From Macrostomum lignano (lineage: Eukaryota), in contig NIVC01000573.1 of assembly GCA_002269645.1 (NCBI GenBank), positions 434,001 through 498,000 on the forward strand: 64,000 nt of DNA, read 5' to 3'. The notes beneath the pieces were generated by a model, which had not been told where the DNA came from, made no database searches, and was given only the letters and a program-made list of their open reading frames with translations. Shown here piece after piece: positions 639-23,421 of the stretch. The position numbers and the translations under genes were made by a program. Each line of letters begins with the position of its first letter. Position 1 is the first letter of the stretch.

Positions 639-1107
639 GTGAGGCGGCAGAACTCCAGTTTCGGGATGTGGGGGGGGGGGGCTTCCTGTGTGCCTCATCA
701 ACCGAGTCGGTGTTGCAAATCCATTGATTGCATTTCACTCACCTGCAGGGCCGCCGCTCAGTCTGCATTTTGCCCAGCAACGAAATTGCATTGTTACATT
801 ATGATGGAAACTCAGCATTTTCTATTCCAGATGCAGTTTATAAAGATAGAAAATATCCCCAATTATTTGGGATCAAATTGCTGCTTACATCTTTACATTT
901 ATTTGTGTTTTTTAGCGTATTTAAGATTGCTTTACATTGATTTATTGGGCCAGGTTTCATCGATCCCGTTGCTACGGTAAACATTGCCGTTGCTAAGAGA
1001 TTGATAACTAGAATAGATTCAATGTTAGTCTAGGGGGAATGCTAATTAGTAGTGTGTAACGCAAATTTACTCCCTATTTTTATTGACATTTGTCTCCTTT
1101 ATTTCAG

Positions 1108-7070: not shown

Positions 7071-7480
7071 TTGCCCTCGCATATATGTTCAACCCAACCC
7101 TGTGATTACAGCTTTGCCATGGCAACAGGAATTTCTGAATAAATCATGTCTACACAAAACTGAAAATGAACTGATCTTATATTCGCAGAGTTGCGGACTT
7201 TGCTTATAAAGCAATCCTTACTCTGGCTTTCCCTTTCCACTGTTTTTCCACTGTCTGTCCCACACGGCTAAGAGATTTCATCGCTGTTCGCCTCACGATC
7301 TCGAACCCTCCCTCCCCTTCTGTATCGCTGTTGTGCAATTGTCTTTTTTTACAATGTCCCTTGCTTCTTTACTGCGCTTGCATCGCATCTCTGCTCCTAA
7401 CTATTATGCTATATTATTGTATATTATGTTATATTATTACCCTGTGAAGTGAGGCCGGTCGTTGGCATCAGGTATCAGGT

Positions 7481-8103
7481 ATAATGTGCTTGTTGTGGAT
7501 GATAATGTGCTTGTTGTTGATGATAATGTGCTTGTTGTGGTTGATAATGTGCTTGTTAATTGTGGATGATAATGTGCTTGTTGTTGATGATAATGTGCTT
7601 GTTGTGGATGATAATGTGCTTGTTGTGGATGATAATGTGCTTGTTGTTGATGATAATGTGCTTGTTGTGGTTGATAATGTGCTTGTTAATTGTGGATGAT
7701 AATGTGCTTGTTGTTGATGATAATGTGCTTGTTGTGGATGATAATGTGCTTGTTGTGGATGATAATGTGCTTGTTGTTGATGATAATGTGCTTGTTGTGG
7801 ATGATAATGTGCTTGTTGTTGATGATAATGTGCTTGTTGTGGATGATAATGTGCTTGTTGTGGATGATAATGTGCTTGTTGTTGATGATAATGTGCTTGT
7901 TGTTGATGATAATGTGCTTGTTGTGGTTGATAATGTGCTTGTTGTGGATGATAATGTGCTTGTTGTGGATGATAATGTGCTTGTTTTGGATGATAATGTG
8001 CTTGTTGTTTATGATAATGTGCTTGTTGCGGGTAATAATGTGCTTGTTGTGGATGATAATGTGCTTGTTGTGGATGATAATGTGATGTTGTGGATGATAA
8101 TGT
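7481..8103. repeat. 21-bp minisatellite (~30 copies)
   Basis: Unit GATAATGTGCTTGTTGTGGAT and variants. Confidence 0.95.
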
Positions 8104-8625
8104 AACAGTACAAGGATGCCGTATCCAAGGTAAATCACCGTTGCTAAAGCCACCAGGTAATCGTACGTAGCAGCACCCAAATTTTAAATTAGTTATTCTT
8201 GATGTTGCAAGATACAGATGTACTTTGTTGGCCAATGTTGGGCGTTGATTTTGTTCCGCAGACCCCCTATTAGCAACTGGTGTGTTCTGCTTTCCTACTG
8301 CACCTGTTTTGTCCAGCCCGTGTCACACAGGTTTTTCATCATTTTTTTCTCGACCCTAACTCACACTACTGGTATTAATAAGTAGTATATTAAGCTTAGC
8401 TATAAAAATTGGTTTGAGAGCTCTCTGTCCGATGTTAAAAGTTTTGTACTTCTCGCACTTTTATTCACCGTCCGCTGAACTAATAGGGTATAACTTTGCA
8501 CACAGAGTTCAAGAGTGTATCTGATGTATTAAATTAATATTCAATGTACCAGGATGTTTCATTATGTGTCGTGGTTCACAAAAAAAATTCATAAAATACT
8601 TATCTAATTCGTGTATAACGGCTAA

Positions 8626-11600
8626 ACCCAAGAATGGAGCAAAAAAGTCAACTTTGTTAGTCTTATTGTGTCACCAATTTTATACGAGTGTGCCTTACAA
8701 GTACTAATGATTGATATAATGATTGATATAATGATTGATTCGTAAGAAAGTTTGATCACAATAATTATGGACAAAAAATCACTAATGTTGAGACCCCCTC
8801 AGCCCAATTAGTAGCCCGCCGGGAAATTTAATGGCTGTGTGAGCTTTTAAGCGCACACAGAAATTTACGGCATGAATCATATCGCGTGAATAACACACAA
8901 GCTCACACAGCCCTCAAATTTCCCACCGGGCAGTTTTGATGACGGAGCTTTTGGGAAAATGCACTTCATCCATAATCTCTTTAGATTTCCAAAGAAATCT
9001 GTAAACATTGGGGTCGACTTTACTTAAACCTACTAATGAATCAACTTCTATGACAAATTTACAACAGAAATCTTCCCCCAATTGTCTCGGCAGGCTCCTA
9101 TTATACGCGACATGGACCTAATCATAAATTCAAGTAGCAGCTTGCTTGAAGAAACACACCCAGTACATGCAAAAAGTTCTTGCATATCAAGTAGAAATTT
9201 TAAAGTACCGAATGTTAATCAGGCACTCAAAACCACTAGCTACTACGAGTATAAGGTTACTGAAATTATAAGGCTGCTTAAATGAATTGAAAACAAAAAC
9301 AGGGAACTAAAGTTTCAAGACCCGGCCGTTTGTTCCTTATGAGTGAGTAATGAGTCATGGAAACTAGGAACTACACACGTCAATTCTAATAATAGAACCA
9401 GGAACCTCACCCACCCCCAGAGACAATGCACTGTTTTATTTAAAGGCTTTGTATAAGGCAGGGCGTAGCTAGAATAGGAAGGACGTGGCACTAAGCACTA
9501 AGTTCTGATATTTGGAAAATTTGGCTATTTTTTGCCGTCAAAGAAGTCAGTCATACAGGCACGTGTCGTCAGTAAAAAGTCTGCTGCTCTGTAAGTCAAC
9601 ATTTCTGCAAAGTACATCTTTAATTTACCTATTTAATGTAATATCCATATCCTATCTGCTAATGGAACTAATCTCATCTAGAGACCTCGTCAACTCATCT
9701 AGACACCCCGTCAACTCATCTAGAGACCCGTCAGCTCATCTAGACACCCCGTCAACTCATCTAGAAACCCCATCAACTCATCTAGAGACCTCGTCAACTC
9801 ATCTAGACACCCCGTCAACTCATCTAGAGACCCGTCAACTCATCTAGAAACCCCATCAACTCATCTAGAGACCTCGTCAACTCATCTAGAGACCCCGTCA
9901 ACTCATCTAGAGAACCGCCAACTCATCTAGAGACCTCGTCAACTCATCTAGAGACCCTAAGAATGGAGCAAAATTGTCAACTTTGTTAGTCTTATTGTGT
10001 CACCAATTTTATACGAGTGTGCCTTACAAGTACTAATGATTGATATAATGATTGATATAATGATTGATATAATGATTGATATAATGATTGATTCGTAAGA
10101 AAGTTTAATCACAATAATTATGGACAAAAAATCACTAATGTTGAGACCCCTTCAGCCGAATTAGTAGCCCGCCGGGAAATTTAATGGCTGTGTGAGCTTT
10201 TAAGCGCACACAGAAATTTACGGCATGAATCATATCGCGTGAATAACACACAAGCTCACACAGCCCTCAAATTTCCCACCGGGCAGTTTTGATGACGGAG
10301 CTTTTGGGAAAATGCACTTCATCCATAATCTCTTTAGATTTCCAAAGAAATCTGTAAACATTGGGGTCTACTTGATTCGCCATCTTCCGAAATCATACGT
10401 CGAACTTGCCGCTTACTTAAACCTACTAATGAATCAACTTCTATGACAAATTTACAACAGAAATCTTCCCCCAATTGTCTCGGCAGGCTCCTATTATACG
10501 CGACATGGACCTGATCATAAATTCAAGTAGCAGCTTGCTTGAAGAAACACACCCAGTACATGCAAAAAGTTCTTGGATATCAAGTAGAAATTTTAAAGTA
10601 CCGAATGTTAATCAGGCACTCAAAACCACTAGCTACTACGAGTATAAGGTTACTGAAATTATAAGGCTGCTTAAATGAATTGAAAACAAAAACAGGGAAT
10701 TAAAGTTTACAGACCCGTTTGTTCCTTGTGAGTGAGCAATGAGTCATGGAAACTAGGAACTACATACGTCAATTCTAATAATAGAACCAGGAACCTCAAC
10801 CACCCCCAGAGACAATGCACTGTTTTATTTAAAGGCTTTGTATAAAGCAGGGCGTAGCTAGAATAGGAAGGACGTGGCACTAAGCACTAAGTTCTGATAT
10901 TTGGAAAATTTGGCTATTTTTTGCCGTCAAAGAAGTCAGTCATACAGGCACGTGTCGTCAGTAAAAAGTCTGCTGCTCTGTAAGTCAACATTTCTGCAAA
11001 GTACATCTTTAATTTACCTATTTAATGTAATATCCATATCCTATCTGCTAATGGAACTAATCTCATCTAGAGACCTCGTCAACTCATCTAGACACCCCGT
11101 CAACTCATCTAGAGACCCGTCAGCTCATCTAGACACCCGTCAACTCATCTAGAAACCCCATCAACTCATCTAGAGACCTCGTCAACTCATCTAGAGACCT
11201 CGTCAACTCATCTAGAGACCCTAAGAATGGAGCAAAATTGTCAACTTTGTTAGTCTTATTGTGTCACCAATTTTATACGAGTGTGCCTTACAAGTACTAA
11301 TGATTGATATAATGATTGATATAATGATTGATATAATGATTGATATAATGATTGATATAATGATTGATATAATGATTGATATAATGATTGATATAATGAT
11401 TGATTCGTAAGAAAATTTGATCACAATAATTATGGACAAAAAATCACTAATGTTGAGACCCCTTCAGCCCAATTAGTAGCCCGCCGGGAAATTTAATGGC
11501 TGTGTGAGCTTTTAAGCGCACACAGAAATTTACGGCATGAATCATATCGCGTGAATAACACACAAGCTCACACAGCCCTCAAATTTCGCTCAGGGCAGTT

Positions 11601-14600
11601 TTCATGACGGAGCTTTTGGGAAAAATGCACTTCATCCATAATCTCATTAATTTATATATTTATTATTTCCAAAGAAATCTGTAAACATTGGGGTCGACTT
11701 GGTTCGCCATCTTCCGAAATCATACGTCGAACTTGCCGCTTACTTAAACCTACTAATGAATCAACTTCTATGACAAATTTACAACAGAAATCTTCCCCCA
11801 ATTGTCTCGGCAGGCTCCTATTATACGCGACATGGGCCTGATCATAAATTCAAGTACCAGTGCTTGAAGAAACACACCCAGTACATGCAAAAAGTTCTTG
11901 CATATCAAGTAGAAATTTTAAAGTACCGAATGTTAATCAGGCACTGATTTCGCATTTTGTTTTCAATCAGACAGCTACTACGAGTATAAGGTTACTGAAA
12001 TTTTAAGGCTGCTTAAATGAATTGAAAACAAAAACAGGGAATTAAAGTTTACAGACCCGTTTGTTCCTTGTGAGTGAGCAATGAGTCATGGAAACTAGGA
12101 ACTACATACGTCAATTCTAATAATAGAACCAGGAACCTCAACCACCCCCAGAGACAATGCACTTTTATTTAAAGGCTTTGTATAAAGCAGGGCGTAGCTA
12201 GAATAGGAAGGACGTGGCACTAAGCACTAAGTTCTGATATTTGGAAAATTTGGCTATTTTTTGCCGTCAAAGAAGTCAGTCATACAGGCACGTGTCGTCA
12301 GTAAAAAGTCTGCTGCTCTGTAAGTCAACATTTCTGCAAAGTACATCTTTAATTTACCTATTTAATGTAATATCCATATCCTATCTGCTAATGGAACTAA
12401 TCTCATCTAGAGACCTCGTCAACTCATCTAGACACCCCGTCAACTCATCTAGAGACCCGTCAGCTCATCTAGACACCCCGTCAACTCATCTAGAAACCCC
12501 ATCAACTCATCTAGAGACCTCGTCAACTCATCTAGACACCCCGTCAACTCATCTAGAGACCCGTCAACTCATCTAGAAACCCCGTCAACTCATCTAGAGA
12601 CCCGTCAGCTCATCTAGACACCCCGTCAACTCATCTAGAAACCCCATCAACTCATCTAGAGACCTCGTCAACTCATCTAGAGACCCCGTCAACTCATCTA
12701 GAGAACCGCCAACTCATCTAGAGACCTCGTCAAGTCATCTAGAGACCCTAAGAATGGAGCAAAATTGTCAACTTTGTTAGTCTTATTGTGTCACCAATTT
12801 TATACGAGTGTGCCTTACAAGTACTAATGATTGATATAATGATTGATATAATGATTGATATAATGATTGATATAATGATTGATTCGTAAGAAAGTTTGAT
12901 CACAATAATTATGGACAAAAAATCACTAATGTTGAGACCCCCTCAGCCCAATTAGTAGCCCGCCGGGAAATTTAATGGCTGTGTGAGCTTTTAAGCGCAC
13001 ACATAAATTTACGGCATGAATCATATCGCGTGAATAACACACAAGCTCACACAGCCCTCAAATTTCGCTCAGGGCAGTTTTCATGACGGAGCTTTTGGGA
13101 AAATGCACTTCATCCATAATCTCTTTAGATTTCCAAAGAAATCTGTAAACATTGGGGTCGACTTTACTTAAACCTACTAATGAATCAACTTCTATGACAA
13201 ATTTACAACAGAAATCTTCCCCCAATTGTCTCGGCAGGCTCCTATTATACGCGACATGGACCTAATCATAAATTCAAGTAGCAGCTTGCTTGAAGAAACA
13301 CACCCAGTACATGCAAAAAGTTCTTGCATATCAAGTAGAAATTTTAAAGTACCGAATGTTAATCAGGCACTCAAAACCACTAGCTACTACGAGTATAAGG
13401 TTACTGAAATTATAAGGCTGCTTAAATGAATTGAAAACAAAAACAGGGAACTAAAGTTTCAAGACCCGGCCGTTTGTTCCTTATGAGTGAGTAATGAGTC
13501 ATGGAAACTAGGAACTACACACGTCAATTCTAATAATAGAACCAGGAACCTCACCCACCCCCAGAGACAATGCACTGTTTTATTTAAAGGCTTTGTATAA
13601 AGCAGGGCGTAGCTAGAATAGGAAGGACGTGACACTAAGCACTAAGTTCTGATATTTGGAAAATTTGGCTATTTTTTGCCGTCAAAGAAGTCAGTCATAC
13701 AGGCACGTGTCGTCAGTAAAAAGTCTGCTGCTCTGTAAGTCAACATTTCTGCAAAGTACATCTTTAATTTACCTATTTAATGTAATATCCATATCCTATC
13801 TGCTAATGGAACTAATCTCATCTAGAGACCTCGTCAACTCATCTAGACACCCCGTCAACTCATCTAGAGACCCGTCAGCTCATCTAGACACCCCGTCAAC
13901 TCATCTAGAAACCCCATCAACTCATCTAGAGACCTCGTCAACTCATCTAGAGACCTCGTCAACTCATCTAGAGACCCGTCAACTCATCTAGACACCCCGT
14001 CAACTCATCTAGAGACCCGTCAGCTCATCTAGACACCCCGTCAACTCATCTAGAGACCCGTCAGCTCATCTAGACACCCCGTCAACTCATCTAGAGACCC
14101 GTCAGCTCATCTAGACACCCCGTCAACTCATCTAGAAACCCCATCAACTCATCTAGAGACCCCGTCAACTCATCTAGAGAACCGCCAACTCATCTAGAGA
14201 CCTCGTCAAGTCATCTAGAGACCCTAAGAATGGAGCAAAATTGTCAACTTTGTTAGTCTTATTGTGTCACCAATTTTATACGAGTGTGCCTTACAAGTAC
14301 TAATGATTGATATAATGATTGATATAATGATTGATATAATGATTGATATAATGATTGATTCGTAAGAAAGTTTAATCACAATAATTATGGACAAAAAATC
14401 ACTAATGTTGAGACCCCTTCAGCCGAATTAGTAGCCCGCCGGGAAATTTAATGGCTGTGTGAGCTTTTAAGCGCACACAGAAATTTACGGCATGAATCAT
14501 ATCGCGTGAATAACACACAAGCTCACACAGCCCTCAAATTTCCCACCGGGCAGTTTTGATGACGGAGCTTTTGGGAAAATGCACTTCATCCATAATCTCT

Positions 14601-17272
14601 TTAGATTTCCAAAGAAATCTGTAAACATTGGGGTCGACTTTACTTAAACCTACTAATGAATCAACTTCTATGACAAATTTACAACAGAAATCTTCCTCCA
14701 ATTGTCTCGGCAGGCTCCTATTATACGCGACATGGACCTAATCATAAATTCAAGTAGCAGCTTGCTTGAAGAAACACACCCAGTACATGCAAAAAGTTCT
14801 TGCATATCAAGTAGAAATTTTAAAGTACCGAATGTTAATCAGGCACTCAAAACCACTAGCTACTACGAGTATAAGGTTACTGAAATTATAAGGCTGCTTA
14901 AATGAATTGAAAACAAAAACAGGGAATTAAAGTTTACAGACCCGTTTGTTCCTTGTGAGTGAGCAATGAGTCATGGAAACTAGGAACTACACACGTCAAT
15001 TCTAATAATAGAACCAGGAACCTCAACCACCCCCAGAGACAATGCACTGTTTTATTTAAAGGCTTTGTATAAAGCAGGGCGTAGCTAGAATAGGAAGGAC
15101 GTGGCACTAAGCACTAAGTTCTGATATTTGGAAAATTTGGCTATTTTTTGCCGTCAAAGAAGTCAGTCATACAGGCACGTGTCGTCAGTAAAAAGTCTGC
15201 TGCTCTGTAAGTCAACATTTCTGCAAAGTACATCTTTAATTTACCTATTTAATGTAATATCCATATCCTATCTGCTAATGGAACTAATCTCATCTAGAGA
15301 CCTCGTCAACTCATCTAGACACCCCGTCAACTCATCTAGAGACCCGTCAGCTCATCTAGACACCCCGTCAACTCATCTAGAAACCCCATCAACTCATCTA
15401 GAGACCTCGTCAACTCATCTAGAGACCTCGTCAACTCATCTAGAGACCCTAAGAATGGAGCAAAATTGTCAACTTTGTTAGTCTTATTGTGTCACCAATT
15501 TTATACGAGTGTGCCTTACAAGTACTAATGATTGATATAATGATTGATATAATGATTGATATAATGATTGATATAATGATTGATATAATGATTGATATAA
15601 TGATTGATATAATGATTGATATAATGATTGATATAATGATTGATATAATGATTGATTCGTAAGAAAATTTGATCACAATAATTATGGACAAAAAATCACT
15701 AATGTTGAGACCCCTTCAGCCCAATTAGTAGCCCGCCGGGAAATTTAATGGCTGTGTGAGCTTTTAAGCGCACACAGAAATTTACGGCATGAATCATATC
15801 GCGTGAATAACACACAAGCTCACACAGCCCTCAAATTTCGCTCAGGGCAGTTTTCATGACGGAGCTTTTGGGAAAAATGCACTTCATCCATAATCTCATT
15901 AATTTATATATTTATTATTTCCAAAGAAATCTGTAAACATTGGGGTCGACTTGGTTCGCCATCTTCCGAAATCATACGTCGAACTTGCCGCTTACTTAAA
16001 CCTACTAATGAATCAACTTCTATGACAAATTTACAACAGAAATCTTCCCCCAATTGTCTCGGCAGGCTCCTATTATACGCGACATGGGCCTGATCATACA
16101 TTCAAGTACCAGTGCTTGAAGAAACACACCCAGTACATGCAAAAAGTTCTTGCATATCAAGTAGAAATTTTAAAGTACCGAATGTTAATCAGGCACTCAA
16201 AACCATTATGACAGCTACTACGAGTATAAGGTTACTGAAATTTTAAGGCTGCTTAAATGAATTGAAAACAAAAACAGGGAATTAAAGTTTACAGACCCGT
16301 TTGTTCCTTGTGAGTGAGCAATGAGTCATGGAAACTAGGAACTACATACGTCAATTCTAATAATAGAACCAGGAACCTCAACCACCCCCAGAGACAATGC
16401 ACTTTTATTTAAAGGCTTTGTATAAAGCAGGGCGTAGCTAGAATAGGAAGGACGTGGCACTAAGCACTAAGTTCTGATATTTGGAAAATTTGGCTATTTT
16501 TTGCCGTCAAAGAAGTCAGTCATACAGGCACGTGTCGTCAGTAAAAAGTCTGCTGCTCTGTAAGTCAACATTTCTGCAAAGTACATCTTTAATTTACCTA
16601 TTTAATGTAATATCCATATCCTATCTGCTAATGGAACTAATCTCATCTAGAGACCTCGTCAACTCATCTAGAGACCTCGTCAACTCATCTAGAGACCCGT
16701 CAGCTCATCTAGACACCCCGTCAACTCATCTAGAAACCCCATCAACTCATCTAGAGACCTCGTCAACTCATCTAGAGACCCCGTCAACTCATTTAGAGAA
16801 CCGCCAACTCATCTAGAGACCTCGTCAAGTCATCTAGAGACCCCGTCAACTCATCTAGAGACCCCGTCAACTCATCTAGAGACTCGTCAACTCATCTAGA
16901 GACCTCATCAACTCATCTAGAGACCTCGTCAAATCATCTAGAGACCCCGTCAACTCATCTAGAGACCTCATCAACTCATCTAGAGACCTCGTCAAATCAT
17001 CTAGAGACCCCGTCAACTCATCTAGAGACCTCGTCAACTCATCTAGAGACCCCGTCAACTCATCTAGAGACCTCGTCAAATCATCTAGAGACCTCATCAA
17101 CTCATCTAGAGACCTCGTCAAATCATCTAGAGACCCCGTCAACTCATCTAGAGACCTCGTCAACTCATCTAGAGACCCGTCAAATCATCTAGAGACCCCG
17201 TCAACTCATCTTGAGACCTCGTAAACTCATTTAGAAACCTCGTCAGCTCATCTAGAGACCTCGTCAACTCAT
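8626..17272. repeat. Tandem array of six ~1.2-1.8 kb units, each with an internal 12-bp VNTR, a 21/22-bp VNTR and a hairpin
   Basis: Unit start (CCC)TAAGAATGGAGCAAAATTGTCAAC recurs at about 8626, 9956, 11219, 12746, 14223 and 15447. Identical short ORFs (MSRQAPIIR..., MENLAIFCR...) recur. Internal (AATGATTGATAT)n and (GTCAACTCATCTAGAGACCCC)n vary in copy number. Confidence 0.95.
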
Positions 17273-18228
17273 TTAGGGGCTACACATCAGCCAATGTAGA
17301 TGCGTGCCATTGTGGTGGATAAAATTCATAAAAGTACACAGTAAAGGCAATAAAATAGCCGCTTGCCTGGAAGGGCGAAGCTGGTCTCTGGAAGGGTGAC
17401 TAAGCCAGGATGAAATTAAGGCGCAATTAAGCAATATCCAGTCTTGTCCCAAAGTAGGCAAAAAATCGAATTTTTTTATTATAAGGCCTTGAAGTAGCCT
17501 TGGAATAACTAACTGTTTTTCTCAGTCGATCAGTCTATCAAATCAGTTAGCAATATTGCCAATAGTGCAGAATCATACGCTAGAGATGTACATGTACTCT
17601 GTGCACTCTAGATTCGCCAAGCGGCTCGGGTTAATGAATCATGCGGTCTCTGAAGTTCGAGTTAGCCTATCAGCAGCGCTACGAGAGGCTGGTTGGCGCG
17701 TTGAGGGTCAAAAGTACAATCCCTCGTATTTAGCTATTGCGGACTCGCCACCGCAAGAATCCCCTGCACAAGTCCCCTCTGTACCTGCATGGCCAATGCG
17801 ATCAAGTCCCAGCAGAGTCCCCTCCCTTATCATCGGCTATGACTTCGAGATTGACAGCAAAAAGACACTAGTTGGCAGGTAAGTGCCAAGCCCCCTCTAG
17901 TCGGAAGCCCGATTTCGAAAGTCCCGGTTTGGTGAGCCAGGACGCACGGGCTGGTGGCAGCGGGTTAGTTAATCTGTGGATTAGCTGATCTCTACCTTCA
18001 AAATGCTCCCTTCTTGTCTCTCGCTGTCCCTCTCTTAGCTATAGGACCTAGACTTCTCACCACAGATCAAACAACATATTGCGAAATTGTTTGAATGATA
18101 TTTGCAAGTGTTGCGTCCTGATTCAACGGTAACTTTTAGTGCTCCTTGATATAAGATTGCATGGTACTTTGGAGCAAAAACTCGTCATAATATTATTATT
18201 GCAGAGAGCGGCGCTCGCATCACGAGAA

Positions 18229-21200
18229 ATGGCGACAGACGTTGCGAATCAAAGTCTGTCAATCCCGTACATAGGAGGACCTGCATCGCTCGGAACCCTG
18301 TACGATGCTCAAACAGGCAAATACCTGACGGGTCCCAAGCTCTGGTCTCGGAAGACAACCGACGAAATGACCGTCACCAGGCCCAATGTGAGTCAGGCAA
18401 TCAGCATTGAATCACAGTCCAGCTTTTCCGACAGAGCAAAAAAGCTAGAGATGAGCGCCGATTTAAAACTCAGCTTTCTGTGCGGTTCCGCCGAAGTGGA
18501 AGGCTCAGGAAAGTACCTCACTGAGAAACTGACTCGAGTCAACTCAGAGAGTCTCGTATTTGCATACAAAACCTTGACTGAGTTCAAGGAGCTGCACCTG
18601 GGTCCTGAAGTTGAATACCCGCAATTTCTCGATGACGAATCAGCCACGCACGTTGTGACCGGGATCCAGTACGGCGGCAGGGCGTTTCTTGTGTTTGAGC
18701 GAGAGAAGCAAGAAAGTGAAAGCAAGACTGGGATTTCAGGCTCATTCAGAGGCCAGGTGTCTAAACTGAAGAGCCTTTTCGAAGTTTCTGGTCAACTGCA
18801 GGCAGAGCACTCAAAGAATGACGCCACGGAGACAGAGAGTATTCGATGCCGTTACTATGGCGACTTCAAGCTGGAACCGCCTCCGCTCACACTCAGGGAG
18901 GCCTTCGGTTGTGTGCAGAGCTTCAAGAGCGAAAACGCCGGCTCTCCGGTCCAGGTGTATCTCACGCCTCTCAGCAAAATCGGAGGAAAAGATCAGAAAC
19001 TGATGAGAGGCATCAGTGAAGAATGCTTGAACGAAGCCGGAAATTACTGCCAGCTGCTAGACGACATAATAAACGCTGCCGATGACAAGATTAAGGAGCT
19101 TGAAGACACGCCGTGGCGAATGCAGTGCGAAGTGTTGGCCACGTTTAGAGATCGGGTGCAGGCATACCGGACCCGCTTTAGAGACCAGCTGATGTCAATT
19201 TTGCCCAGGGCGCGTCAAACAGGAGATGTAAGTAGAGAGATTTCCGAGCTCATTTCGCGTCAGAAAGACGAATGCGGAGCCTCACCTCAACAGCTATTGA
19301 TGTGGTTGAGAAACAGAGAAAGAGAGTGCATGGCGCTGCAGCATTCCGCCCGTGTTCTCTCAGACAACGGTGCTCGCGTTCTGAATGAAAGAGAAAAGGA
19401 TGAGTTATTCGTCGCAAACAGATCCGATTACAAACTTTTGTTTGAGGTCCAGGCACCAAGATCACATTTTCCACAGTACTTGCCGCAGCCAACGTGTGCG
19501 GAGGAAGTAGGAAAAACTTGGATCGAATCGGAAGATTACCGCAGCTACCGGAGAGATTTGGACAGGGCAGTGAGATTTCTTCAACAAAATCGTGGATCGG
19601 CTGCGGTAGCAGTTATTGAAGGCTCTCCACATGACCAACAAACTGTCAAGTTGCAAATAAAGTGTTACAAAGACTTTGCATGGACTGAAACGGAACTGCC
19701 AAAGCCACCAACTGAGCTGCAGTGCTCAGAAGTGGATGAAAACACAGCCAAGTTTTCTTGGAAAGCCGAACCAAATGCATCGAACGGATATGTAGTCTAT
19801 GTTCTTAGACAACGGGAGGCTGACTTACTACCATATCACAGAGAATCAACTGAGACCAACAGCATTACTGTAAGCTCTCTGTATGCGGGAACTCCTCACA
19901 AAGCGTATGTCACTGCCGTGACAGAACTCGGAGAATCTGAGCCCAGCGAGCAGATCAGTTTTACCACTGAGCCTGCGTTGAACTGCTCAGAATTCGTTCT
20001 GCAGAACTTTTGCGAAGACAATCCGACTCCAGCTCAGAAAAGAGAAACCTTTGCTGGGAATATTTTTCAGTTAAGGGTTCGGCAGATTCCATCACCAGAA
20101 TGCAAGTGCTCTCAGAGTTGCATCTGTCCCAACTCTTTCGAAGTCGGCAACCGGAATGCAGGCGGAGGGCCACCGAAGTTCCTGCTTCTAATTGGAGAGA
20201 CAGGAGCAGGCAAGAGCACCCTAATCAATGGCATTGCAAATGCCTTTTACAGGGTACAGTTCGATGACAATTTTAGACTGAAACTAGTTGGACAGCTCGA
20301 AAGTCGCCACAAAAGTGCAGCTGCAAGCCAGGCTCATTCGCAGACCGCTGGCGTGTCCGTGTACACACTCTTTCCTGTGGACACAGGAGGCACGGAGGAC
20401 AGTCACAGAAGTGCAATGGACTGTCCTCTCACCATCATTGACACGCCGGGATTCGGGGACACTCGGGGTCCGGCTCAGGATAAAATTAATATTAAGAAAA
20501 TAGCGAAAATGCTTGGTGAAGACGGGCAATATATTCCTGGAATGACGGGGGTTTTGCATGGAATCGGTTTCGTTGTGAAAGCTTCCCAAAACCGACTGAA
20601 CGCAACGCAGAGGTACATCTTTGACCAAGTACTATCTCTTTTTGGAAAGGACGTGAAGCCCATCATTTATCCTCTTTTTACATTCGCCGATAGCGAAGAA
20701 CCGGAGGCTCTGGATGCCTTGGATGAAGACAAAGTGCCTTACAAAACGTATCTAAGCTTCAACAATGCTGCGTTGTACGCCAACAACACAGAGTCTGAGG
20801 GCCCCGAAGCGAGCCGTGGAGAGTCTAAGAGCTCGCAGTTTCACTTGAAAGCCCCACAATGGAAAAAATGTAATTACAACTATCAACAACTCTTTGAGAA
20901 GCTCGAAAGCAGCCACGATGGGGTCTCATTGCTCAGCACCCGAGAGACTCTGAAAAGTCGCAGATCGATGGAAGTCTGCGCGGAGAAACTGAAGTTAAGT
21001 GTCCAGTCAGACCTACAAAAGCTGACCAATCTAGCGGAGTATGTTAAACTAGTTGGCTCTTGTGGCAAGTTCTTTTTTAGCTCGGATTTTAGTAAGACAT
21101 GCGAAGTTAGGTCCTTGGAAGTTCGAGAGGTTAAACTGCCCCATGATCAGTTTGCCACGAACTGCATGGCATGTCGAAGAACTTGTCATGACAAATGCAG

Positions 21201-21864
21201 TCAGAAAGACAGCGCCTTGTGCTCTGTTATGGACTCTAGCGGCTGCTGCATAGTTTGTCCGAAAAATTGTGTTTTGTCTGAGCACCGCAACAGCGAATAT
21301 CGCTTTGAAGAATACGAAGTCGCGAAAACCGTGACTGTGGAGGAAATTGCTAAAGAGTATGGAGTAGTAATGCATGTAGTACCAATCGTAAAAATGCATG
21401 AAATAAAAATTGCAAAACTTTTTGCAAAACAATTTTGCAAAACTGAAGGTCTTCTATTAAAAATCAAAGCAGACATAGACGCAACTTTCGATGAGCTGTC
21501 CTACAACATTGTGACAATTCACAAATGCCTGCAGTCACTTGAGCAGATGGCTCTGCGCCAGTACCCGTTAAGCGTGAGGGAGTACGTGGACCATCTTATT
21601 GAGATGGAAGACACCCAGAAACGTCCTGGCTGGGAAAATCGGACGAAGCTACTGCAGGAGGCCAAAAAGTCTGCAGAGATCATCGCTGCAGCTCGCGATG
21701 GACAAGACCCGTTCGAGAGCAACAAGGAAAGAATTTTAAAACAGTGTGAGAAAGCCCTTCGGGTGATCCGGATCCGTGACTTATTTGGATATTACCTATG
21801 TTTTTGCTTGGAGTTTCTCTCTTATAAGCACTATAAAGCTGCTAGCAGGAAATCTGCCGGCTGA
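18229..21864 (+). CDS. Stonustoxin/verrucotoxin-like MACPF + helical domain + FN3 + AIG1/septin-like P-loop GTPase + Cys/His-rich domain + coiled coil (~1211 aa)
   Basis: Uninterrupted 3.7-kb ORF; first ATG at 18229, just after acceptor TATTATTATTGCAG| (18204). SNTX-like motifs SLGTLYDA..G..LW and THVVTGIQYGGRAFLVFE (~18646), and a helical segment F.D.L.SILPRAR...LLMWLRNRERE. FN3 from PKPPTELQCSEVDENTAKFSW to SEPSEQISFTT (~19699-19970). G1 GETGAGKS (20194), G3 DTPGFGDT (20440), G4-like FTFAD (20677). TNCMACRRTCHDKC...CIVCPKNC...H (~21157-21290). Family assignment is by motif recognition. Confidence 0.85.
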   Translation: MATDVANQSLSIPYIGGPASLGTLYDAQTGKYLTGPKLWSRKTTDEMTVTRPNVSQAISIESQSSFSDRAKKLEMSADLKLSFLCGSAEVEGSGKYLTEKLTRVNSESLVFAYKTLTEFKELHLGPEVEYPQFLDDESATHVVTGIQYGGRAFLVFEREKQESESKTGISGSFRGQVSKLKSLFEVSGQLQAEHSKNDATETESIRCRYYGDFKLEPPPLTLREAFGCVQSFKSENAGSPVQVYLTPLSKIGGKDQKLMRGISEECLNEAGNYCQLLDDIINAADDKIKELEDTPWRMQCEVLATFRDRVQAYRTRFRDQLMSILPRARQTGDVSREISELISRQKDECGASPQQLLMWLRNRERECMALQHSARVLSDNGARVLNEREKDELFVANRSDYKLLFEVQAPRSHFPQYLPQPTCAEEVGKTWIESEDYRSYRRDLDRAVRFLQQNRGSAAVAVIEGSPHDQQTVKLQIKCYKDFAWTETELPKPPTELQCSEVDENTAKFSWKAEPNASNGYVVYVLRQREADLLPYHRESTETNSITVSSLYAGTPHKAYVTAVTELGESEPSEQISFTTEPALNCSEFVLQNFCEDNPTPAQKRETFAGNIFQLRVRQIPSPECKCSQSCICPNSFEVGNRNAGGGPPKFLLLIGETGAGKSTLINGIANAFYRVQFDDNFRLKLVGQLESRHKSAAASQAHSQTAGVSVYTLFPVDTGGTEDSHRSAMDCPLTIIDTPGFGDTRGPAQDKINIKKIAKMLGEDGQYIPGMTGVLHGIGFVVKASQNRLNATQRYIFDQVLSLFGKDVKPIIYPLFTFADSEEPEALDALDEDKVPYKTYLSFNNAALYANNTESEGPEASRGESKSSQFHLKAPQWKKCNYNYQQLFEKLESSHDGVSLLSTRETLKSRRSMEVCAEKLKLSVQSDLQKLTNLAEYVKLVGSCGKFFFSSDFSKTCEVRSLEVREVKLPHDQFATNCMACRRTCHDKCSQKDSALCSVMDSSGCCIVCPKNCVLSEHRNSEYRFEEYEVAKTVTVEEIAKEYGVVMHVVPIVKMHEIKIAKLFAKQFCKTEGLLLKIKADIDATFDELSYNIVTIHKCLQSLEQMALRQYPLSVREYVDHLIEMEDTQKRPGWENRTKLLQEAKKSAEIIAAARDGQDPFESNKERILKQCEKALRVIRIRDLFGYYLCFCLEFLSYKHYKAASRKSAG

Positions 21865-22243
21865 AGTTTGTTATCTGCAATTTGATAGCTGGGATTTTGC
21901 GAACTTCGTTGTATTCTTTACCGAGTAATTCTTTTCCAATTATTTGAAGCACAAAAAATTCTGTTTTACAATACAAGCTTATTAGCCTTCTTAGCAGTCT
22001 ATTTTTCTTCGAAATATAACAATTTTAGCATATGGGCTTTTACAACTTCACAAAAGTAGTGTGCCTAAGTTAAAAATGCATTATTTAGCAATTAAACAAC
22101 AAATTTAAGTCCCAGTGTTACTGGCAGTGCTAACAATCATATCATAACTAAAAGCTTTATGTGATTAATAATTGCTAAGGAAATATGCCTAATTTTAGCA
22201 TGAAAAATTCTAGCCAGCAAAATTTCTTCTAGAAAACCTCACT

Positions 22244-22486: not shown

Positions 22487-22658
22487 ACTGACACTGAAGC
22501 TGACACTGACTGACTCTATATAGACTCTATGACACTGACGGTATGCATGGACTCTCCTGATTGTCATCTGTTGAGAGAGTGGAAAAACTATTCTAATATA
22601 TGAGTTATAATCATATCGCTACCAATTATCCACATTACCATTCCGAATGAGTCTTTTT

Positions 22659-23421
22659 TGTTTATCTTGTTTAATCTTGTATATTCTTGTTTAGTCTTGT
22701 TCAGTCTTGTTTTATCTTGTTTAATCTTGTTCAATCTTGTTCAATCTTGTTTATTCTTGTTCAGTCTTGTTTTATCTTGTTTAATCTTGTTCAATCTTGT
22801 TTAATCTTGTTTAATCTTGTTTAATCTAGTTTAATCTTGTTTATTCTTGTTTAATCTTGTTTAATCTTGTTTAATCTTGTTTAATCTTGTTTAATCTTGT
22901 TTAATCTTGTTTAATCTTGTTTAATCTTGTTTAATCTTGCTTAATCTTGTTCAATCTTGTTCAATCTTGTTTAATCTTGTTTAATCTTGTTTAATCTTGC
23001 TTAATCTTGTTCAATCTTGTTCAATCTTGTTTAATCTTGTTCAATCTTGTTTAATCTTGCTTAATCTTGTTCAATCTTGTTCAATCTTGTTCAATCTTGT
23101 TCAATCTTGTTTAATCTTGTTCAATCTTGTTCAATCTTGTTCAATCTTGTTCAATCTTGTTTAATCTTGTTCAATCTTGTTCAATCTTGTTCAATCTTGT
23201 TCAATCTTGTTTAATCTTGTTCAATCTTGTTCAATCTTGTTTAATCTTGTTTAACCTTGTTTAATCTTGTTTAATCTTGTTCAATCTTGTTTATTCTTGT
23301 TTAATCTTGTTTAATCTTGTTTTATCTTGTTTAATATTGTTTAACCTTGTTTTATCTTGTTTAATCTTGTTCAATCTTGTTTAATCTTGTTTAATCTTGT
23401 TTAATCTTGTTTAATCTTGTT
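22659..23421. repeat. 10-bp minisatellite (TTAATCTTGT/TCAATCTTGT), ~76 copies
   Basis: Direct reading of the sequence. Confidence 0.97.

Follow-up and report, generated by a model that had tools for sequence, protein, structure and literature searches.

The question raised by this locus is whether a toxin-like pore-forming domain and a GTPase have been joined into one working protein in Macrostomum lignano. The locus lies in a 64-kb stretch of contig NIVC01000573.1, which was analyzed as a whole and is referred to below as the window, and it contains a long open reading frame (ORF) encoding a protein of 1,211 residues (P0001), to which all residue numbers refer. From the N-terminus, this window protein was found to consist of a stonustoxin (SNTX)-type MACPF/CDC domain, a FAT-like helical domain, a probable degenerate thioredoxin-like (THX) domain, a fibronectin type III (FN3) domain, a Cys-rich linker, a G domain of the septin/GIMAP/Toc class, a long helix, a β-rich domain containing 8 Cys and 2 His, and a helical bundle. 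This architecture itself is close to certain. The best explanation of the whole, which we favor with modest confidence, is a fusion family in which GTP would drive MACPF assembly and pore formation.

The frame is open from 18139 to 21864 on the forward strand, with its first in-frame ATG at 18229 and a TGA stop ending at 21864. At the base composition of the window, 1,241 successive open codons would arise by chance with a probability of ~2e-30. An exact look-up located the protein in assembly GCA_002269645.1 on the same contig, and the gene is a single exon because the annotated gene range equals the coding sequence (CDS). NIVC01 is the Mlig_3_7 assembly of M. lignano, and its GenBank annotation was obtained solely from a genome-guided RNA-seq transcriptome, so that gene boundaries are experimentally supported (PMC5730564). 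The window gene is hence a genuine, transcribed M. lignano gene, and its transcript-based annotation is evidence, indirect yet real, for transcription of the fusion as a single unit. An earlier note, made from the sequence of the window alone, had let its proposal depend on such continuous transcription, which a single-exon CDS in an annotation derived from RNA-seq transcripts leaves standing. That this frame is a chimera, a pseudogene, or the product of read-through between two neighboring genes in repeat-rich DNA is very improbable; such an account could appeal to the minisatellite-rich surroundings, in which this is the sole long credible ORF in 64 kb, and to the last ~35 residues, which lack a counterpart in homologs, but it is opposed by the length of the open frame, by the transcript-derived gene model, by catalytic and ligand residues that are all intact, and by a collinear architecture in four M. 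lignano paralogs and in proteins of at least four phyla. No second copy or paralog was detected within the window by tblastn, and an Rfam scan of the window gave 0 matches. As the earlier note had stated for the 18229 ATG, the protein is predicted to have no signal peptide, and no transmembrane segment is predicted either: its N-terminus is polar, and the highest Kyte-Doolittle mean over any 19-residue window is 1.2.

The N-terminal half was assigned by sequence and by fold, with Pfam matches judged against the curated cut-offs. Pfam MACPF_SNTX matched residues 12-188 with 33.1 bits (cut-off 27), and a phmmer search against PDB sequences aligned residues 10-380/400 with stonustoxin beta (4wvm_B, E=1.3e-37) and alpha (E=3.6e-32), nearly without gaps. 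An AlphaFold2 (AF2) model of residues 1-593, which reached a predicted local distance difference test score (pLDDT) of 80.4 and a predicted template-modeling score (pTM) of 0.68, was compared with the PDB using Foldseek. The best matches were 4wvm_B (E=1.2e-26, template-modeling (TM) score 0.58) and 4wvm_A, and the MACPF domain of Toxoplasma TgPLP1 (5own) also matched (E=3e-6). The predicted topology follows the canonical MACPF order of strand 48-62, helices, strands 106-122 and 141-159, helices, and strand 206-211. The stonustoxin MACPF/FAT fold was thus recovered over 380 residues, as the earlier note had required of the N-terminal ~350 residues. The motif ATHVVTG at residue 139 opens a variant of the MACPF signature, A139-T-H-V-V-T-G-I-Q-Y-G-G149, for which the SNTX counterpart is ATHVV.GI.YGA. 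T140, H141, V142, V143, T144, and G149 do not vary among 13 SNTX-type sequences; compared with the canonical (Y/W)-G-(T/S)-H-(F/Y)-x6-G-G, the first two positions and the aromatic residue after His differ, and they differ likewise in SNTX. Sequence, fold, and signature together place the window protein in the SNTX branch of the MACPF/CDC superfamily.

Two helical clusters lie between these strands, at the positions of the hairpins TMH1 and TMH2, which are predicted to insert into the membrane. In the AF2 model, TMH1 comprises helices 66-72, 77-84, and 92-98 between strands 48-62 and 106-122, and TMH2 comprises helices 164-167, 171-185, and 196-204 between strands 141-159 and 206-211. TMH1 aligns with SNTX without gaps and exhibits an alternating hydrophobic/polar pattern (LEMSADLKLSFL / AEVEGSG); the corresponding pattern of TMH2 is GISGSFRGQVS / LFEVSGQLQAE, and the lengths of both clusters are SNTX-like. 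The following FAT-like domain is composed of four long helices (264-291, 297-331, 335-348, and 353-379) and was matched by Pfam Stonustoxin_helical over residues 302-367 (27.5 vs 27 bits); the SNTX FAT domain, 266-385, is aligned here with residues 264-379 (boundaries from PMC8704401). The next segment forms an α/β domain at the position of the THX domain of SNTX. Pfam Thioredoxin_11 was not detected in the window protein; the shrimp, reedfish, and Varanus homologs do have it at this position. An hhalign comparison of residues 378-490 with Thioredoxin_11 segments was in register and weak (probability 9%, P=0.0036), and residues 380-487 are probably a degenerate THX domain. The FN3 domain was identified by Pfam fn3 over residues 493-578 (39.5 vs 25 bits, E=6.6e-10), by seven AF2 β-strands, and by FN3 structures with TM scores to target of up to 0.89. 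The MACPF, helical, and FN3 domains that the earlier note had read in one ORF are accordingly all above their Pfam cut-offs. A word-indexed search with the N-terminal half returned 5 matches, too few for a deep alignment.

This half is closely comparable to stonustoxin and neoverrucotoxin alpha and beta of Synanceia (4WVM). The MACPF/CDC and FAT domains are shared (E=1e-37; Foldseek TM 0.56-0.58), as are the ATHVV.G...GG signature, the TMH1 and TMH2 lengths, the α/β domain at the THX position, and a sequence that starts straight at the MACPF domain with no leader (the alignment begins at SNTX residue 4-6). The stonustoxin subunits have ~700 residues and carry a PRYSPRY domain, whereas the 1,211-residue window protein bears FN3 and a 630-residue GTPase-Zn-stalk region instead, is from a flatworm, for which no venom context is known, and has a THX domain that Pfam does not detect. 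No Pfam match to SPRY/PRY (B30.2) was obtained in the window protein at E≤1, and what follows residue 490 is FN3 and GTPase. In stonustoxin, PRYSPRY sits where perforin and the CDCs have their target-recognition domain, and the α/β MACPF pair forms a prepore-like dimer (PMC8704401). A "neoverrucotoxin subunit alpha-like" protein of Megalops cyprinoides (P0007) has the same MACPF-FAT-THX-FN3 order over its first ~580 residues; SNTX-like proteins of non-venomous vertebrates, however, end after FN3 or bear PRYSPRY and have no GTPase module. SNTX-like MACPF proteins outside venom are already known, and the stonustoxin structure paper reportedly noted their wide distribution.

The C-terminal half was modeled separately (AF2, residues 594-1211; pLDDT 79.5, pTM 0.75). 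The motifs GETGAGKS, DTPGFGDT, and FTFAD pointed out in the earlier note are present at residues 656, 738, and 817. The positions that are 96-100% conserved in 252 aligned relatives are all present here, namely G1 (G656...K662), the switch-I SQT (T706), G3 (D738-T-P-G), G4 (T818-F-A-D821), and F844-N-N, and the set G1-G4 marks the domain as a predicted P-loop GTPase (TRAFAC). Foldseek matched the G domain with GIMAP7 (3zjc; TM to target 0.54, E=1e-6), Toc34 (1h65/3bb1; 0.56-0.58), GIMAP4 (3lxx; 0.65), Toc33, and septins, at 0.5-0.65 overall. A profile of 45 family members retrieved septins, over G1-G3 only (E=1e-7), and then Toc34. The Pfam results stand against a closer assignment, since AIG1 scored 21.9 vs 27 bits (a partial match at 723-833) and Septin 18.8 vs 26.2 bits (model positions 7-75 of 280 only). 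Among the sampled family members, 27 of 37 match AIG1 at E≤1e-4; P0134 and P0015 exceed the cut-off, and most relatives match the AIG1 or the Septin model, or both. The G domain is therefore in the septin/GIMAP/Toc class by fold and profile, outside any named family: the description as a GIMAP/septin-like GTPase holds for the class, whereas GIMAP or septin proper is not supported below those thresholds.

GIMAP/AIG1, Toc34/Toc159, and the septins (TRAFAC, septin-like superfamily) share this G-domain fold. The G3 sequence DTPGFGD is identical to that of septins, whereas the G4 of the window protein is TFAD, without the canonical NKxD, and none of these families has a counterpart of its ~340-residue stalk, Zn domain, and helical extension. 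They act through nucleotide-dependent dimerization or oligomerization of their G domains. R789, which is 97% conserved and lies ~48 residues past G3, is located roughly at the place of the catalytic arginine of Toc34 and GIMAP7, and is treated as a lead only; the FNN motif is presumably reminiscent of the G5 region of GIMAP.

Beyond the G domain, nothing was recognized in Pfam, NCBIfam, PADLOC, or PDB sequences; for the linker, Zn module, stalk, and C-terminal helices, even Pfam matches at E≤10 included nothing credible. The linker preceding the G domain (PSPECKCSQSCICPNSF) is shared with one paralog (P0002, ESCQCPADHCICPESF) and missing from P0004/P0005 and the wider family; it is Cys-rich and may be an extra small metal-binding knuckle. 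Downstream, the motif SL.LT..VL.ER is conserved at 900-911 in the helices that leave the G domain. The Cys/His cluster of the earlier note proved real: each of C979, C982, C986, H987, C990, C998, C1007, C1010, C1014, and H1019 is kept by 96% or more of the 252 members, and the β-rich domain that holds them has no relative in Pfam, NCBIfam, or PDB sequences. A second conservation peak, L..MALRQYPL...EYVDHLIE.....RPGW..R, spans 1104-1138. The terminal coiled coil proposed in the earlier note survives in the form of long predicted helices (902-947, 1058-1107, and 1163-1210). The whole C-terminal half resembles a bacterial dynamin pair, GBP1, and MxA loosely (Foldseek E=1e-7 to 1e-4, TM 0.16-0.22), and Pfam Dynamin_N gave E=0.069. 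The likeness to dynamin-like proteins and GBPs (5OXF, GBP1 8R1A, MxA) lies in their layout, with a long helical stalk placed after the G domain; their G domain is of another class, and they have no MACPF domain.

Residues 1179-1211 (21763-21861) form an aromatic, Cys-rich hydrophobic tail (IRDLFGYYLCFCLEFLSYKHYKAASRKSAG) that is unique to the window paralog. Lipidation or amphipathic contact with a membrane is a conceivable role for it; it may also be a plain recent extension. A C-terminal tail anchor such as that of Toc34 or GIMAPs was considered and rejected, because residues 1179-1197 (Kyte-Doolittle 1.2) are too short and weakly hydrophobic and are not kept in the paralogs.

The GTPase-Zn-stalk region turned out to be a module of ~560 residues belonging to a large unnamed family, for which no Pfam model exists beyond the G domain. 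An HMMER search with residues 594-1211 collected 2,948 representatives at 50% identity (E≤1e-3), of which 725 were at E≤1e-30; values for family members went down to 1e-131 over residues ~650-1160. The module is nearly always C-terminal, in proteins of 500-2,300 residues, and its named carriers include sponges, cnidarians, molluscs, crustaceans, echinoderms, fishes, and cyanobacteria. By its sequence, the window protein is a member of this collinear family, which is characterized by the G domain, the SL.LT..VL.ER helix, the Cys8His2 β-domain, and IALKPNPL...EYIDLLIE...KPGW; it holds all family-conserved positions, with a few substitutions (W1016L, P1111Q). Some members contain three or four tandem G domains, which we would liken to GIMAP8, two complete MACPF-FAT-THX units, or many FN3 domains (among P0134, P0135, P0164, P0228, and P0183); P0164 and P0228 have two MACPF units, and P0183 has eight FN3 domains before the GTPase module.

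The partners of the module bear on a reading in which the MACPF domain is repurposed and non-lytic, as in astrotactins and other perforin-like proteins, so that the protein would be a large GTPase for membrane remodeling, trafficking, or scaffolding in which MACPF/FAT binds membranes or proteins. Among 37 MACPF-lacking members, the N-terminal partner was most often FN3 (20/37), with B-box in 5, the SNTX thioredoxin domain in 3, and a kinase in 1. Most GTPase-Zn-stalk members lack MACPF and bear only FN3 repeats, B-box, or kinase, which means that the module also functions without pores, and its weak likeness to bacterial dynamin, GBP1, and MxA points in the same direction. Non-lytic perforin-like proteins are well documented (for example PMC5483515, PMC4892435). 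Repurposed MACPF domains often lose signature or TMH features, however, whereas in the window protein the signature and the two TMH clusters survive, the clusters at lengths like those of SNTX and with alternating patterns, and its closest characterized relative, stonustoxin, is a bona fide pore former; we consider the non-lytic reading distinctly unlikely.

Complete modules were also found in cyanobacteria, at 32-33% identity to the flatworm protein, in Roseofilum (L005/L006, 8001-11033) and Microcoleus anatoxicus (L003, 2930-4927). The Roseofilum gene is set among photosystem II (PSII), EF-G, and aconitase genes and is therefore genuinely bacterial. Transfer between cyanobacteria and animals, and a conflict-system context, are possibilities. 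A search of the window module and the cyanobacterial members with PADLOC and NCBIfam gave only matches of P-loop length, those of PADLOC at E≥2e-5, and a known bacterial anti-phage defense system was rejected as a candidate on the lack of any PADLOC match beyond the P-loop. A conflict-systems paper mentions AIG-type GTPases as bacterial effectors and mentions neither this family nor MACPF (PMC7159879). With regard to the neighborhoods, the Roseofilum gene has DUF4351 genes on both flanks, with an HTH_VMAP-M9 gene just downstream and another ~7 kb upstream, and the Microcoleus gene comes after two co-directional genes of unknown function.

The fusion of both halves is not confined to the window. 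An N-terminal SNTX-type MACPF domain was detected by local phmmer in 44-46 of ~260 fetched family members. The same architecture was found in crustaceans (XP_068232724.1 of Palaemon carinicauda, XP_053648736.1/XP_069958579.1 of Cherax quadricarinatus, and XP_057377823.1 of Daphnia carinata), echinoderms (XP_071833385.1 of Apostichopus japonicus and XP_033624670.1 of Asterias rubens), and vertebrates (XP_051781755.1 of Erpetoichthys calabaricus and XP_044275469.1 of Varanus komodoensis). The Pfam order MACPF_SNTX, helical, Thioredoxin_11, fn3, and Septin/AIG1 is identical in Palaemon, Erpetoichthys, and Varanus, the three for which it was checked in full; the other homologs were defined by local phmmer matches to both halves. 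They share 25-45% identity with the window protein and differ in the numbers of FN3, MACPF, and G domains, and the Cys-rich linker and the unique tail belong to the window copy. The similar fish architectures that the earlier note mentioned are borne out by Erpetoichthys, a basal ray-finned fish, whereas its framing as a flatworm matter was too narrow, since crustaceans, echinoderms, and a reptile have the architecture too. All named homologs are labeled "uncharacterized protein", and a literature search returned no description of a MACPF-GTPase fusion, of the GTPase-Zn-stalk family, or of a Macrostomum stonustoxin-type protein. The fusion is thus an undescribed bilaterian protein family, whose members are in public databases under automatic names only.

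Four proteins of M. lignano, with 37-43% identity and collinear over the full length, are the sole close relatives and are old paralogs; BOX15_Mlig008863, Mlig029040, and Mlig019872 are among them. Over the MACPF half, the nearest relatives of the window protein are Mlig029040/Mlig019872 (53% identity). Over the GTPase half, the nearest is Mlig008863 (48% identity), and Mlig029040/019872 are there as distant as non-flatworm members. This mosaic relationship suggests that paralogs have exchanged domains or that rates have been very uneven.

Divergence of the MACPF half was correlated with that of the GTPase half (Mantel r=0.70, p=0.001), also after removal of close relatives (r=0.37, p=0.005), as is expected if the fusion has been inherited as a unit. 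In a neighbor-joining (NJ) tree of the GTPase module, MACPF-bearing members were not monophyletic but scattered, requiring 32 state changes vs ~43 for shuffled labels, and single origin and strict co-inheritance are therefore not proven. This tree was star-like and poorly resolved, and many gene models are possibly truncated at the N-terminus, such that it is not decisive. A second architecture, encoded at L008 6073-8970 (P0009; Logan SRR27126261), combines MACPF_SNTX, DUF7656, a Cys-rich segment, and a homologous G domain (E=7e-14), so the association of these modules has arisen or been kept more than once. The neighboring gene of P0009 encodes a sugar transporter and is interrupted by short introns; the host is probably a fungus. 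In a Mycena protein (P0132), MACPF_SNTX occurs together with MORN repeats.

In the mechanism that we propose for the GTP-driven pore, the protein would stay intracellular, as suggested by the lack of a signal peptide and transmembrane segment, the expected requirement for GTP, and the putative Cys-rich metal site. GTP binding would cause dimerization of the G domains or oligomerization through the stalk, as in septins, GIMAPs, Toc34, and dynamin-like GTPases. This C-terminal assembly would set MACPF domains side by side on the target membrane, similar to the prepore-like dimer of stonustoxin α/β, and the Zn-bearing β-domain at the far end of two long helices would be a candidate ligand- or membrane-binding tip. 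TMH1 and TMH2 would then unfurl and insert, leading to a β-barrel pore. GBP1 serves as the working analogy for GTP-driven membrane assembly, which it undergoes on pathogen membranes (PMC11746146, PMC12091997). Pore formation by the window protein is an evenly balanced matter; GTP gating is a more tentative element that we would not expect to hold on balance. The GTPase-gated cytosolic pore former of the earlier note, cast there as sensor, switch, and executioner in one chain, is nevertheless plausible, with defense or regulated cell lysis as its most likely role. A bolder version, in which a nucleotide-gated intracellular perforin is a bilaterian-wide cell-autonomous effector whose Zn-tipped-stalk GTPase assembles on a pathogen-containing or self membrane and drives an SNTX-type MACPF pore, is rather unlikely in our estimation.

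Several points weigh against the GTP-driven pore. A simple amphipathicity score placed TMH1 at the 76th and TMH2 at the 27th percentile, not distinguishable from the protein background, so that the case for the membrane-inserting clusters comes from the visible alternation and the gapless SNTX alignment. Dynamin and GBP are only weakly similar to it (TM ~0.2), and no sensor domain is identifiable in the window protein. FN3 is typically extracellular, and stonustoxin itself begins without a leader yet acts extracellularly; the missing signal peptide is thus weak evidence for the cytosol because stonustoxin also starts straight at MACPF. In addition, an FN3-bearing "neoverrucotoxin beta-like" protein was found in carp skin mucus and was up 3.5-fold after parasite infection (PMC5910588). 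Together with the leaderless stonustoxin and the FN3 domain, this finding weakens the case for intracellular action.

The same observations favor a released cytolysin like stonustoxin, which would be stored in gland or epidermis and secreted unconventionally or by holocrine release against prey, predators, or microbes. The GTPase-Zn-stalk region would then serve storage, auto-inhibition, or packaging inside the cell, or nucleotide-independent targeting outside. SNTX-like transcripts in venom studies of nemerteans, glycerids, and cerianthids fit this reading as well, and the carp result supports a defense role and the released toxin equally. Mucus proteomes include the contents of lysed cells, however, a signal peptide occurs in none of the aligned homolog N-termini, and nucleotide motifs conserved in ~250 members together with Cys8His2 are traits of a reducing, GTP-containing cytosol; we therefore regard release as unlikely, and the GTP-driven intracellular assembly remains our preferred reading.

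The features of the gene and protein are listed below. The splice-acceptor-like sequence TTATTATTGCAG upstream of the ATG is a possible acceptor for spliced-leader (SL) trans-splicing or for an intron of the 5′ untranslated region (UTR); 38.8% of M. lignano genes are trans-spliced (PMC5730564).

Table 1. Features of the MACPF-GTPase gene and its product in the window (nucleotide positions of the window; residues of the 1,211-residue protein).
Feature	Residues	Positions	Strand	Evidence
Splice-acceptor-like sequence, ends 24 nt 5′ of ATG		18193..18204	+	read from sequence
Complete single-exon CDS with TGA stop	1,211 residues	18229..21864	+	identical to NCBI gene-call product, NIVC01000573.1
SNTX-type MACPF/CDC pore-forming domain	~1-262	18229..19014	+	Pfam, phmmer, AF2 + Foldseek
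TMH1 helical cluster, predicted membrane-inserting hairpin	63-105	18415..18543	+	AF2, alignment to SNTX
MACPF signature variant A-T-H-V-x6-G-G	139-149	18643..18675	+	alignment
TMH2 helical cluster	160-205	18706..18843	+	AF2
FAT-like helical domain	264-379	19018..19365	+	Pfam, AF2, alignment
α/β domain at SNTX THX position	380-487	19366..19689	+	AF2 topology
FN3 domain	490-581	19696..19971	+	Pfam, PDB FN3 matches, AF2
Cys-rich linker	582-645	19972..20163	+	common to paralog P0002
Septin/GIMAP/Toc-class G domain	646-870	20164..20838	+	Foldseek, family profile, motifs
G motifs	G1 656-663 (GETGAGKS); G2 T706; G3 738-741 (DTPGFGDT from 738); G4 818-821 (TFAD; FTFAD from 817); G5-like FNN 844-846			
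Helices leaving the G domain, outward arm of predicted stalk	875-894; 902-947 (46-residue helix)	20851..21069	+	AF2
β-rich Cys8His2 domain, putative Zn-binding module	957-1036	21097..21336	+	AF2 strands, conservation
C-terminal helical region	1058-1210	21400..21858	+	AF2 helices 1058-1107, 1116-1130, 1135-1156, 1163-1210; no Pfam model
Candidate poly(A)-signal-like hexamer ATTAAA, first one 3′ of stop		22091..22096	+	sequence only

The remainder of the window is rich in minisatellites. Upstream of the gene, seven arrays of a 21-bp unit (CTCATCTAGAGACCCCGTCAA) are located at 9673-17276 with a spacing of ~1.3-1.5 kb, forming a higher-order repeat that stops ~950 bp before the gene, and they generate spurious repeat-encoded ORFs at 16481-16816 and 16876-17163. 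An ORF of 255 residues at 7468-8235 (-) lies within a 21-bp tandem array (7481-8103); it gave a sub-threshold match to Pfam "New_glue" (25.6 vs 31 bits) and is probably a repeat artifact. Just downstream of the gene, a 10-bp array occupies 22658-23421. It is followed at 24000-34000 by a GC-rich block (55-61% GC vs 32-48% in the surroundings) with long overlapping ORFs on both strands, for example 25358-27283 (-) of 641 residues; these ORFs have no Pfam match and are probably driven by repeats or composition. A tandem array at 38310-47409 covers 9.1 kb with 285 copies of a 32-bp unit (94% matches), and many further minisatellites are found across the window.

To our knowledge, the characterized MACPF/CDC pore formers are all controlled by secretion, receptor or lipid binding, pH, or proteolysis, and we know of none that is placed on a nucleotide switch. 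The MACPF-GTPase fusion is specific neither to the window nor to flatworms, yet it is undescribed. That flatworms, crustaceans, echinoderms, a basal fish, and a lizard have all kept it argues that a common function has been under selection. The GTPase-Zn-stalk module occurs in animals and cyanobacteria, with at least 725 clusters (50% identity) at E≤1e-30, and curated domain models leave over half of its length uncovered. If the GTPase does gate assembly, this would constitute a new regulatory principle for perforin-like proteins, and the fusion would be a candidate for an ancient branch of cell-autonomous immunity or of regulated lysis. A nucleotide-gated perforin, if real, would be a single-chain MACPF counterpart of the vertebrate logic of GBP/IRG plus pore former, and the first GTP-controlled perforin-like protein. 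Transgenesis and RNA interference (RNAi) in M. lignano make this question experimentally tractable.

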